From positions 7,378,001 to 7,442,000 of the forward strand of contig NW_026262582.1 of the NCBI RefSeq assembly GCF_021869535.1: a stretch of 64,000 nt of DNA. Direction: 5' to 3'. Below are positions 43,221-48,089 of the stretch, piece after piece. This DNA comes from Mytilus californianus (taxonomy: Eukaryota). How positions within the stretch are numbered: position 1 is the first letter of the stretch; each line of letters begins with the position of its first letter. Under the pieces are notes generated by a model, which ran no database searches, was not told where the DNA came from, and saw only the letters and a program-made list of their open reading frames with translations. The position numbers and the translations under genes are program-made.

Positions 43221-43746
43221 CTGTGATTTCCCCTTTTCAACCAGTAAACAACAGATCCGTAATGCGGAAGAAAATTAACTAAATTTTTGTAAATTAATCG
43301 AAAAGCACAGCAATTAAAACTTTTTATCTTGTTGAACAAATAAAGTTCAAAGAATTTTCCCTGACAGATGAACACAATACCAACAGAATTAACTGCATAC
43401 GTTTAATATCAAGTTTGAATTACATGTAATTTTTAACTTCCGACAAATTTTAGAGGTTTTTTGTTTGAAACTGTATCATATTACATCTAAACGGCAATAC
43501 AGAAAGATTGATTGTGAAATGAAATAAAGAACGTCAAGTGAGTAGTCAAGCTTAACATGTTTTCTAAAAGAAAACCATTGTGTATGGATAAATAGATAAC
43601 TGTATCCGGAGTACAAAATTCCGGAAGTCAAAGTCATTTAAAATGAATAGAGTTACTTCCCCTAGTACCATAAGAATGATTGACTCATACAAGGTCGATC
43701 AAAATAAATACCCCACAAAATAATCTTTACCTAATCAGTAAGGATG

Positions 43747-43855
43747 CAGTGGCCGATCCAGGGGGGTGTTCTGGGGGTTGGAATCCCCCCTTTTTTGACG
43801 ATCAATGCTTTTGAATGGGGACATATGGTTGGAACCCCTTTAAAAATGGCTGGGA
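43747..43855. mobile_element. Degenerate MITE (CAGTGGCGGATCCAG family)
   Basis: cagtggccgatccagggggg...gatcaatgcttttgaatgggacata..gttggaacccc...aaaaatggctgg; matches 54276-54445. Confidence 0.7.
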
Positions 43856-43989
43856 TGTGCTTGTCTATTTTGATCAACGAAACCAAACTAGCATCTATAA
43901 TTTTTTACGCATCGCGTGGCTTGACAATATGCTTACCATAAGAGAGCCTAAGATCCTGTATCCACATCTAAGTTTAGCTCACAATTTAC

Positions 43990-46567
43990 ATTATCGCACC
44001 TCGAGTAAATAGTCACATTGTGATTGGTTTAACGCCGTCACGTGGTGACCCCCTATGGACCCGTAGGGGGTCAGTAGATTTCATAGGGGGTGTCATGGCG
44101 GCGATAGGAGATGACTGATGTGCCGCTTGGAATTTTCAGAACGGTATTTTAAACGCAATACCTTATCGATTCAAGTAATTATTTGGGAGTTGTCCCCCGT
44201 TGACCAGTATACAATATCAGTACTTTAATTGAAGTTATCTCCCGTTTCAAACAACATGTGACGTCATATTTTCGTCTGCAACAAAATGGAGAGATTCGGG
44301 ACGTCAACACGTCAGGACATTGACGATAAAAGACGGAACATTCACTCCGAAAAGACGCAAAAAAGTAACACCCTATCTGCAAAATTGTTCAGGGAATATC
44401 TTACTAGTAAAAATCATGAAGCTGACTTTGAAAGCTTTACAACACAACGTTTGGTTGAATCGTTATCTCATTTTTACCTTGATGCTAGAAAAACAGATGG
44501 TTCCATGTATAAATCCTCTTCCCTGGAATCCATTCGACATGGCTTGAATCGCCACCTTAAAGCACCTCCAAACAATAAGGACTTTGACATTATTAAAGAT
44601 GCAGCATTTCGATATGCAAACATGAGCTTTGACGCTGCAAGGGCCGAACTGAAACAAGCAGGAAAAGGAAACGTTGAACACTGTCCAATTATCCAGGAAT
44701 CTGACAGGGAGAAGCTGTACAAGTCAGTCTACTTTTCTACACAAACCCCCACAGGACTATTTAACAAAGTCCAGTATGATATAAGACTGTATTTTTGCCG
44801 ACGAGGTGCAGAAAATATGCATACAATGACCAAGTCAACTTTTGCTTTGAAAACAGACCCAAATACAGGAATGAGATACATCGAAAAGATTTTAGATGAA
44901 TTAACCAAAAAACATAGAGGAAATGATAAGGAGACAACAAGTGGAGTCATGCCAGAAGCTACAGGTACATTAGTTTATATATTTGATAATCATCAGGCTT
45001 GGTTAGTAATATGTCATTAATTACACCCCCCCCCTCCTCCCAAAAAAAATAATAAAAAACAACCCCAAAATATTGGGTAATTTAAAGTTAAAGAGTCCCA
45101 CCCCCGAAACAAACACAAAATGAAAATGTAACCTGATTATCCACAGACCATCTAATATCTTATTTGACGTGTCGTGAAGTGCAAAAGCATGGAATGGTTT
45201 GTATTTTTACTTTTCAATCATCAATGACTGCAGCACAAAAAAAAAGAAATGTCAAAATTTTCTACATATTTGTATACTTTAAAATGTTTTTTTTTTTTTT
45301 ACTATAACTATATCATATAGAATTTTGTATTCCAGGCTCAATGTATTGTCCAGTGGAATCCTTTATAAAGTATACAGACAAGCTGCACCCTGATTGTGAT
45401 ATGTAAGTGAATTTAACAATAAATAAAAGCTACAATCGTCAAACAACTTTAAACACAATCATAAGAACAAAAACCCCCAAAAAACATGAAAAAACATGGG
45501 TAAAAAAAAAAAAAAAAAACACAGCTGAAAAAATTCACCAAAAGTATATTAAAGAAGGTATGTGTCATAATTGTTCTAAATGTCGAGAAAAGCCAGATTT
45601 TTTTAAAGTTAATTCTTCATTTTATTCTTCATTTAAAAAAAATTTCAGATTGTGGCAGCGTCCAAGGGACTGCTTTGTTGATGACGACAACGAAATATGG
45701 TATTACAACGCACCTGTTGGGAAGAAAAAGCTGAAAACATTTATGAGTGACCTGAGTTTGTCATGTAAACTTAGCCAGAAATATACAAATCATTCCATAA
45801 GAGCAACGGGAGCTTCAATTTTGTCAAAAAATAAGTTTAATGATGCTCAGATAATGTCTGTTACCGGTCACAAATACGTACAATCTCTATCCGTTTATCA
45901 ACGGGTAGACACGCAAGAAAAGTTACAAATGGGACAAACTCTGGGAGTAACTATGGGAGCTGTGCCAGCCCAGATAGAGGCTTTACCAGCACCTCCTATT
46001 AGACCAGCACTACCAGCACCTCCTGTAAGACCAGCACTTACTGAAAATGGATCTATGGCACCTGTTCTTATTGAAGCAAATACTCCGCAGAATTTGCATT
46101 CCGATTTCGAAGGATTCGATTTGAACGCAATATTAGGGGACTTTGATTATAATGAATCATCCATTACTGTTAGCAACACAAGACAAGCTGCCGGTCCACA
46201 ATTATTTCACAAATGTAAAGTGACAATCATTCAAAATCTAACATTGAACAAATGACATTCATTCCGAATTGTATTTTCAAAAAAGAAAATGCTCTAAATA
46301 CTTGTTAGTAGTTGTGTTAATAAATTCCTATTGTTATTGTTATTATTTTTCATTGTTAAATTTTGATATTTTATACTAAACTTGGCAGAAAACGCTCTCT
46401 GTGCGATAAATTTGTTATACGGTTCGCTACTGACCCCCTACGGATCCATAGAGGGTTAGTAAAATCCATAGGGGACTCGGCCTACGGCCTCACCCCCTAT
46501 GGATTTACTAACCCTCTATGGATCCGTAGGGGGTCAGTAGCAAACCATATAACTTATAATAGCTATT
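43990..46567 (+). mobile_element. Crypton-type tyrosine-recombinase DNA transposon, apparently complete
   Basis: Contains a spliced YR gene. The 5' end ATTATCGCACCTCGAGTAAATAGT recurs at 54163; there is a small 5' hairpin (44046-44073) and a large 3' palindrome (46414-46553) ending ...AATAGCTATTT. No TIR or clear TSD. Boundaries are inferred from related copies. Confidence 0.8.
44286..46255 (+). CDS. Crypton tyrosine recombinase (DUF3504-type), 450 aa; exons 44286-44964, 45336-45402, 45649-46255
   Basis: GT-AG introns (phase 1, phase 2); 679+67+607 = 1353 nt = 451 codons with no internal stop. Catalytic-type residues: R in FCRRGAEN, K in ELTKKHR, H-x-x-R in NHSIRAT, H in TGHK, Y in SLSVYQ. 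Spliced junctions read ...EATG|SMYCPVESF...HPDCDI|LWQRP. Confidence 0.88.
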
Positions 46568-48089
46568 TGCATCTCAAATTCCACGTTACCTCTGTCATAG
46601 CGTTTCTCGAGAAATTTTGAGATCACACATTGCCTTCTTAAAATGCCTTGTAACAAAATACTTCAGGATACGTTTTCTACTTTTTCTAATTCTGCCTTTT
46701 ATCATTAACTACTATTTTCTTTTTCCAATTGACTGCGTTTACTTCCTTGTGCTTTCAGAAATATATAAATATTCTCTCTCAAAACAGCACAGACTGTTGT
46801 ATAGGATTCGATACTCTCTCCACTCCTTCCGATATTAACTGAGACGAATCCTTGTTAGTTTCATTTCCTCCGCTTAGTCATATGCTCATATTCAACGGGT
46901 ACTCTGGTCTGAAGTCGGAGAGAACAAGATAGCAGGCAATGTTGGCCGCCTTCACAGGAATGTATGTGAATAGAAAGAAAATATAATGTGCTTTCAGAAA
47001 TTACAAAGAAAAATTGGTGTTACCATACTCGTTACTTGCTTCATAACAAAATAGATAAACTTACTGTACATTCCCTTATAAAATAAATTGTCTATTTTAT
47101 TTCTCCTATTATACATTTAACATGGACTTAAAATTTGAAGTTCTGAAAGATTTTCTACTTTTGTTAAAATAAATGTTACCATAAGATACAAATGTTTATA
47201 TTTTTCATGTGCCATAGATGAGGGTCTTTCATTTCAGCATTCTTTAATTTTTTAGGCATCTTTTCTCTATTTTTAAATATTTTTTACCTATTATTCTCTA
47301 TTTAAGCACCTCATTATTCTCTTTTTTTTTTCTTTCTTATTTTTTTTGGTTCAATTAACTAGTACCGTTTTTATGAAAGTACTAAGCTAAATGTCAATAT
47401 TTATTCGGGTTCAATTCATTTGGCTGATAGAAAGGTTTAAAATAAAATAGTGTTAATAATCACGCACAAGTCTGGCATTGTTTTCACAGTTATATTATTT
47501 TTTTACAATGTAAATGATCCTAAAACAACTATTTTCTGAACAATGGAGTTCACTTAGTACAGTTTGTCTACGATTCTTTTGAAGTAGTGGAATCTTCAGA
47601 CGTTTCATGTTATTACCATAACAACGCGTGCTAATTTATCGTCTGCTAAAACGTCTGTCATTTTCAATCATTATGTTCAACTAATAACTGAAAAAAAACA
47701 ATGTTTTGACTTTAATGATATATTTAACCGAAAAACATAAACTCTTCACTCATTTTCTCGTGGAATGTAATGGTATTACCTCACAAATACATCCAACATA
47801 TTGAAGTAGAAACAGTGTAAATCTTGCCTAAATTATTATATACAATCTAGCCATTGTATATTTTTCAGATATTTATAAAAAAAAAAACAAGGAGATTGAG
47901 GTTTTCTCAAAATATATATTTTGTATCCAACAAGGACGTGATCACCTTTGATTTTATTTTGCTTAATAAATCAAAAGACGGATATCATGTACGACCAAAT
48001 GAAAAGAGGAAACCCACATTAAATGTCACCTATAATGCATAAAAGAATGAGAAACAAAAGCTTCACCTAAATGTAAAAGCAGAAATTAA

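Follow-up and report, generated by a model that had tools for sequence, protein, structure and literature searches.

A conserved subterminal palindrome as a candidate 3' recombination end of CryptonA-type transposons in Mytilus californianus and other animals

What does a long palindrome do at the end of a transposon whose only gene encodes a tyrosine recombinase? Among eukaryotic DNA transposons, Cryptons are, to our knowledge, the class that is least understood, and we know of no animal family with a defined substrate, cleavage site or intermediate. We analysed a 64,000-nucleotide stretch of Mytilus californianus DNA (contig NW_026262582.1), called the window here, that contains an element with a tyrosine-recombinase (YR) gene and a long palindrome near its 3' end. 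A first-pass annotation of this stretch proposed that the asymmetric arrangement of self-complementary units in the element serves the recombinase. We examined the class of the element, whether the palindrome belongs to it, and what role the palindrome could have in its movement.

Element class, gene and copies

The ends of the element were set by aligning about 18 copies with unrelated flanks, which placed its first base at 43991 (TTATCGCACC...) and its last base at 46558 (...AACTTATA). An empty allele was present on a 455-nt contig of run X1, in which 43989 is joined directly to 46558; one A at the junction is ambiguous, and the target is not duplicated. At another locus (L044), a copy of another family is nested in the palindrome of a third family at CGAT/ATAT (the slash marks the point of insertion) with neither duplication nor loss.

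The recombinase gene has three exons, and Pfam searches were run exon by exon with the three kept separate. Exon 3 matched Phage_integrase with E = 9e-6, narrowly below the curated cut-off, and exon 1 had weak matches to QRICH1 and DUF3504. PF12012 and PF00589 are present in homologues of the recombinase, and the matches from protein searches included sequences with 94-96% identity to Mytilus edulis. The motifs RRGAEN, HSIR and GHK...SVY, which correspond to the R...HxxR...H...Y set, were read in the ORFs of the window and of the L043 family. A 27-bp tandem duplication (93% identical) at 45984-46037 repeats a proline-rich nonapeptide in the C-terminal tail of the protein. At four loci from other species that come with a table of called genes (L066-L069), the recombinase is the sole called gene.

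Comparison of 43950-46650 with the genome showed that full copies match across the entire 2.57 kb, introns included, at 93-96% identity. This query found four near-full copies and three truncated copies elsewhere in the genome. There are also hundreds of short copies of about 350 bp that consist of the first ~110 nt and the last ~190-230 nt of the element. Three copies (L005, L006 and L007) have a common insertion of ~180 bp near element position 530 and end within the left arm of the palindrome; because at least two of them have common flanks, they resemble a segmental duplication of one damaged copy. The sequence directly upstream of the element (43712-43935) is a very high-copy repeat with a summed contig depth of 10^4 to 10^5, far above that of its flanks, and RNA reads are heaped on both of its strands.

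A single recombinase gene, exact ends and the lack of a duplication identify the element as an intron-bearing CryptonA-type tyrosine-recombinase DNA transposon. It resembles published CryptonA elements (Goodwin 2003; Kojima and Jurka 2011, PMC3212892) in that its one gene encodes a tyrosine recombinase with integrase and DUF3504/QRICH1-like parts, that reverse transcriptase, terminal inverted repeats and target duplications are all absent, and that non-autonomous deletion derivatives are abundant. The empty allele, the nested insertion and the flank alignments all agree with the absence of terminal inverted repeats and target-site duplications that characterizes Cryptons, and the copies have kept their introns, with no reverse transcriptase. 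The 2568 bp of the window element contain no long ORF besides the recombinase; they contain neither the reverse transcriptase/RNase H and methyltransferase genes of DIRS-like elements nor the Rep/helicase protein of Helitron2.

All Mytilus families, and Saccostrea as well, have a motif similar to TGATTGGTT at a distance of 30-40 nt from the 5' end (5' ends of L043, L056 and L066). This inverted CCAAT box and the CACGTG that follows it are probably the promoter of the recombinase gene, of the host-factor type. RNA run X21 contained zero reads over the body of the recombinase gene.

Table 1. Features of the window element, with positions in the window
Feature	Position	Strand	Basis or remark
Whole autonomous CryptonA-type element, 2568 bp	43991..46558	+	about 18 copies aligned, unrelated flanks; empty allele
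5' terminal box TTATCGCAC	43991..43999	+	boundary sharp in all copies
Inverted CCAAT box (TGATTGGTT), then CACGTG	44021..44044	+	conserved motif
Arm module, 5' subterminal copy, own small hairpin	44046..44089	+	82% identity to left arm
Recombinase exon 1	44286..44964	+	ORF from ATG; GT donor read in sequence
Recombinase exon 2	45336..45402	+	AG/GT borders and frame; agrees with intronless L043-family ORF, 463 aa
Recombinase exon 3, HxxR and GH...Y catalytic motifs	45649..46255	+	ORF; Pfam Phage_integrase
Inverted 5' terminal box (GTGCGATAA on + strand)	46401..46409	-	kept in 15/15 aligned copies
Internal core-like site, central spacer ATTTG	46410..46414		ATTCG in most copies and families
Palindrome left arm	46414..46474		repeat search, fold
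Asymmetric apex	46475..46493		top strand ACTC-GGCC-TAC-GGCC-TCAC
Palindrome right arm	46493..46553		repeat search, fold
3' terminal box CCATATAAC and TTATA	46545..46558	+	break point after 46558

Structure, strand marks and conservation of the palindrome

A repeat search of the window identified two arms of 50 nt each (46414-46463 and 46504-46553) that are 96% complementary, and the pairing extends to 46474/46493 when one 1-nt indel is allowed. When 46405-46562 was folded as single-stranded DNA, it was predicted to form one hairpin at -65.9 kcal/mol; shuffled controls gave -15.9 +/- 2.7 kcal/mol (z = -18) and none of 200 shuffles folded as well. These results confirm a palindrome of ~140 bp at 46414-46553 with arms of ~60 bp, as the first-pass annotation had claimed, and the GGCC-TAC-GGCC apex that it described is also present. 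Its description of the palindrome as terminal was correct in placing it near the 3' end, but the palindrome is subterminal because the end of the element lies 5 nt beyond it. Similarly, the arm indel that it reported is present in the window copy but is not a feature of the family; since most family copies carry an extra T at this position, the indel is private to the window copy.

The self-complementary unit nested in the arms occurs at three sites in the window (44046, 46431 and 46509, each scored on both strands), with zero chance matches expected. The sequence at 44046-44089 is 82% identical over 44 nt, in direct orientation, to the left arm at 46431-46474, which bears out the claim that this unit recurs near the 5' end as a hairpin. 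The L056 and L043 families have their own, family-specific counterparts of this 5' arm module. Directly adjoining the left arm we also found the 5' terminal box in inverted form, a feature absent from the first-pass annotation. The order of the parts is therefore 5' terminal box, putative promoter, arm module, recombinase gene, inverted 5' box, palindrome and a 5-nt tail.

The apex of the palindrome has a fixed orientation, with 161 copies against 3, and two of these 3 represent one duplication. Part of this constancy is inherited, as the copies derive from a small number of masters. The bottom-strand sequence of the apex, GTGA-GGCC-GTA-GGCC-GAGT, corresponds to a C-GNA-G triloop with a 4-bp stem and flanking G.T and G.A pairs. 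C-GNA-G triloops on the bottom strand, with a GC stem of 3-4 bp and a varying N, were found in seven lineages, and five of the seven (the window element, L043, L059, Pinctada and L073) have a tandem G.A internal loop beneath the stem. Littorina has the tandem G.A loop too, with an apical loop of TTTA. The stem letters covary (GGCC, GGC/GCC, GCC/GGC, GAGC/GCTC and CGGC/GCCG); covariation was judged between families, the copies within the window family being too young to inform. In DNA, mini-hairpins of the GCGNAGC type that are closed by a C-G pair have exceptional stability (PMC13037366, PMC3201870).

The top strand would have pyrimidine mismatches where the bottom strand has G.A pairs. The bottom strand is predicted to fold better in 11 of 14 palindromes, corresponding to 7 of 9 independent lineages, although by a modest 2-5 kcal/mol. 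Transition mismatches that favour the bottom strand numbered about 10 versus 3, a bias to which we gave little weight because it is confounded by CpG decay. Among the family variants, L037, L052 and L057 have shorter palindromes (97-124 bp) without a GNA apex. One old, stop-ridden subfamily copy (L011 / L038:2212-2359; 80% identical) has an inverted apex with the outer arm asymmetry unchanged, a rare internal flip.

Many diverged families were found by searching the genome with the exon-3 protein, and the number of families is a lower bound. At least five diverged Mytilus Crypton families have this layout in common. In families with 47-62% protein identity, the Mytilus palindromes are 97-163 bp long and lie 0.6-1.1 kb downstream of the recombinase match. 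Their interiors are about 50% identical between families, which is near chance after alignment, and the two arms inside one element are 72-97% complementary. In most lineages the left arm starts with ATAAATTCGTTAY and the right arm ends with RTAACTWATA, usually followed by AT, and the outer boxes are common to elements from mussel to hydrozoan. The relation between the 5' terminus and its inverted copy was found in the window family, four other Mytilus families, Saccostrea and Amphiura; the copy beside the left arm is 16-17 nt long in the L043 group, 11 nt in L056 and 16 nt in L059.

The oysters Saccostrea and Ostrea have the same layout as the mussel, as does the brittle star Amphiura, where the match to its own 5' terminus is 17 nt. 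In the hydrozoan Clytia the outer boxes are present, and no match to the 5' terminus was found within 3 kb. The periwinkle Littorina, the pearl oyster Pinctada and one metagenome organism have the palindrome with different outer boxes, and one scallop copy has the boxes with the palindrome missing. At six fetched loci the palindrome was not found within 1.5 kb, for which truncation and absence are alike possible. From these comparisons of sequence, the palindrome is a conserved and constrained part of the element across families and phyla. A 4.3-kb inverted duplication in Littorina saxatilis consists of two head-to-head Crypton copies with 99.7% identity (L074:1-4311).

Joined ends, target sites and proposed strand exchange

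Five independent head-to-tail junctions in the genome have the sequence AACTTATA/TTATCGCACC or near variants of it (3/5 exact, 1/5 with a substitution and 1/5 with two extra letters). A single shared TTAT occurs in none of these five junctions, all of which keep TTATA plus TTAT. The same type of joint is present in contigs of another species, and short copies also form tandem arrays. The joined ends, ATAA-CTTATA-TTAT (GATAA...TTATC in the L043 family), are inverted short boxes separated by a 6-nt spacer, and the internal site GATAA-ATTTG-TTAT mirrors this joint across the palindrome. Because the inverted 5' terminus adjoins the left arm, the palindrome spans the joint in the joined form. The first-pass annotation had seen a likeness to the repeats of other YR elements. 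DIRS1, as reviewed in PMC13465315, has inverted terminal repeats and, by its right end, an internal stretch complementary to the joined termini, so that its joint too is mirrored inside the element. DIRS elements, however, are retrotransposons with reverse transcriptase/RNase H, whereas the Crypton copies all keep their introns and have no reverse transcriptase.

The matches listed that are anchored upstream at ATATAAC all run on with TTATA or a one-letter variant of it (100/100). With the exception of tandem joints, TTATA precedes the 5' end in none of the matches listed. There is one junction class only among these matches, with the break always at the same point. The 3' end is followed by the four bases R-T-A-T (R ~84%, T ~94%, A ~78% and T ~62% in 100 matches), and the base preceding the 5' end is mostly a pyrimidine among the matches listed. 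This gives a target consensus of Y/RTAT, in which RTAT resembles the TTATC box. The nested insertion described above (L044:530-760) is an L043-family copy in a palindrome arm of an L056-type Crypton; the palindromes of other families can therefore be targets.

Tyrosine recombinases form a 3'-phosphotyrosine and leave a 5' overhang, as in Cre-loxP. Given this polarity, a break that falls on the right-hand border of the spacer would correspond to a cut of the bottom strand by the monomer at the TTATC box. An exchange of two strands without spacer homology would give two junction classes, leading us to infer that one strand is exchanged and that replication follows. In the Goodwin model, insertion reportedly occurs via crossover in a short direct repeat common to the terminus and the target. 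A crossover of this type in TTAT was rejected because the empty site is without TTAT and the five head-to-tail joints keep both copies. TTAT is found at both ends of the element, but the likeness to the target is RTAT and is on one side only. This crossover is a proposed mechanism and not a defining trait of the Crypton class.

Based on these observations, we suggest that the palindrome acts in cis as the 3' end of a CryptonA-type transposon and that its bottom strand is folded and exchanged, a reading to which we assign a probability of roughly 0.55. The bottom strand would fold into a long hairpin, and at the base of this hairpin the joint strand would pair with the internal mirror. This pairing would create a duplex-like recombination site whose centre is imperfectly paired. 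The recombinase would then cut the bottom strand after GATAA and exchange that strand alone with a Y/RTAT target, and replication would complete the insertion. The fixed apex, the GNA mini-hairpin with its tandem G.A pairs and the single break point fit the exchange of one strand of a folded hairpin.

It is very probable that the palindrome is an essential recombination end, and we somewhat favour the view that only one strand is exchanged. We put slightly less than even odds on a folded single strand being the substrate of the recombinase. More tentative still is the full scheme, in which animal CryptonA elements move via a folded bottom-strand hairpin, with the joined termini paired with the internal mirror, a single exchange and resolution by replication. 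The first-pass annotation had proposed that the asymmetric design supplies the recombinase with binding sites or with a hairpin or cruciform for excision or replication. The results support this proposal, except that hairpin-primed replication is disfavoured because the apex does not flip.

Some observations weigh against the folded strand. A portion of the arm mismatches could be plain CpG decay, and the 5' arm-module repeat would fit protein-binding sites on duplex DNA equally well. The differing boxes of Littorina and Pinctada, the lack of a 5' match in Clytia and the scallop copy without a palindrome also count against it. We know of no eukaryotic tyrosine recombinase that acts on single-stranded substrates.

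Alternative explanations and related systems

The strongest competing explanation is a duplex complex, with the recombinase acting on an ordinary double-stranded circle at ATAA-CTTATA-TTAT. The arms and the 5' module would then be accessory arm-type sites that shape the recombination complex, as in lambda attP, and the palindrome would result only from the symmetric arrangement of these sites. We consider this unlikely. It would account for the third copy of the arm module near the 5' end, which changes with the arms between families, and this repeat speaks for the duplex complex or for both models together. The joint, with inverted boxes on either side of a 6-nt spacer, is also of the classical form, and head-to-tail copies fit the integration of a duplex circle. 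By contrast, accessory sites do not account for the pairing of the whole arm, spacers included, in every family despite sequence turnover, nor for an apex asymmetry that marks one strand through the GNA triloop, the tandem G.A pairs and the covarying stem. The single junction class, at targets without common spacer homology, also argues against a duplex exchange.

The other explanations are much less probable. Hairpin-primed replication or resolution inverts the apex in about half of the cases, and the ratio of 3 flips to 161 is far from half; on these counts apex flip-flop was rejected. A hairpin origin or telomere-like end, which would prime synthesis or be resolved in the manner of parvovirus terminal repeats and protelomerase sites, is thus very unlikely, even though the element has a long terminal palindrome with a GC-rich apex. 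Its break point is the outer base of one arm and not the centre. In favour of such an end, active Chlamydomonas Cryptons gain copies despite excision, for reasons that are unexplained (PMC9977147). We see just as little prospect for a role at the RNA level, where the palindrome could help to process transcripts as a hairpin at their 3' end or could give rise to small RNAs that adjust the activity of the element. Reads of RNA run X21 do lie over both element ends, but they are 90-95% alike and derive from the many short copies, and the poly(A) signal (46319-46324) comes before the palindrome. Moreover, the strand that is favoured lies antisense to the recombinase gene, the GNA triloop is a motif of DNA (PMC3201870), and the conserved break point and the inverted 5' box would be left unexplained. 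Finally, the presence of the palindrome on hundreds of short copies could mean that an unrelated foldback or MITE-type element was inserted by chance at the Crypton end, which we regard as highly improbable. According to the first-pass annotation, its reading would fail if the palindrome occurred as a MITE with its own target-site duplication and were missing from autonomous copies. Instead, it is present in all autonomous copies, and in none of the copies aligned does it stand alone with a target duplication of its own. Every full or short copy that was aligned keeps the palindrome and the boxes, 7 of the 9 short copies inspected also retain the Crypton 5' end, and the palindrome is always downstream of the recombinase gene, including in diverged families and other phyla. 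In the genome there are 436 exact copies of the 16-nt 3' end and 913 matches to the 10-nt 5' box versus 414 for a control, which leaves ~500 real 5' ends, and contig depth at both element ends is 100 to 1000 times the depth of the body. The terminal inverted repeats and target duplication of MITEs and foldback elements were not found in the short copies. An independent MITE was ruled out, since the short copies are composed of Crypton 5' and 3' ends with no target duplication.

The proposed folded strand has parallels in bacterial systems. Integron attC sites (PMC2727003) are imperfect palindromes of ~60-140 nt with a variable interior in which only the outer boxes are conserved, and the Crypton palindrome has this same composition. 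An attC site is a self-paired, duplex-like site with an unpaired centre and a favoured strand, as the Crypton end would be if it folds. One strand of attC is exchanged and replication completes the reaction without duplication, and we propose the same one-strand exchange here. Integrons, however, are bacterial, their integrase belongs to a different subfamily (IntI-type, with an attI partner), and the strand of attC is chosen by extrahelical bases, whereas the Crypton has a DUF3504/Crypton-type recombinase, dispersed Y/RTAT targets and strand marks that consist of a GNA triloop and G.A pairs. In the attP(+) site of the cholera phage CTXphi (PMC3089051), two opposite core-like sites ~90-140 nt apart pair to form a hairpin of ~150 nt with a mismatched centre, and the exchange of a single strand integrates the element, as may occur for the Crypton. 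CTXphi is a single-stranded phage that borrows the host XerC/D and has a fixed dif target, in contrast to the Crypton with its own enzyme and loose Y/RTAT target. Helitron2 (PMC3627910) resembles the mussel element in having a 5' T, no duplication, and a 5' terminal repeat whose inverted counterpart immediately precedes a 3' hairpin. It differs in its Rep/helicase, its hairpins of 20-30 nt and its T-rich insertion sites; the mussel element is without a Rep gene.

The reference survey of Cryptons (PMC3212892) did not detect terminal repeats of whatever type in the animal families, and the only repeats it describes elsewhere are direct ones of 4-6 bp. Curation guides and a 2026 paper describe Cryptons as marked only by short direct repeats. 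The mussel element differs from published CryptonA elements in having a subterminal palindrome of 100-180 bp and an inverted 5' terminus that are conserved across phyla. These features contrast with the papers searched, which report no terminal repeats in animal Cryptons.

The element supplies exact ends, the sequence of the joint, a target consensus and a conserved, strand-marked palindrome found in cnidarians, molluscs and echinoderms, and with these the Crypton mechanism becomes directly testable with oligonucleotides and recombinant enzyme. The layout also provides an annotation signature for Crypton ends and for their very numerous short derivatives. If the folded-strand reading is true, single-strand recombination by tyrosine recombinases would not be peculiar to bacteria. 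Cryptons would then represent a eukaryotic counterpart of integron attC sites and CTXphi integration, which would explain how they gain copies, and this would have implications for the DNA-binding ancestry of ZMYM2-4, QRICH1 and KCTD1, vertebrate genes that derive from Cryptons.
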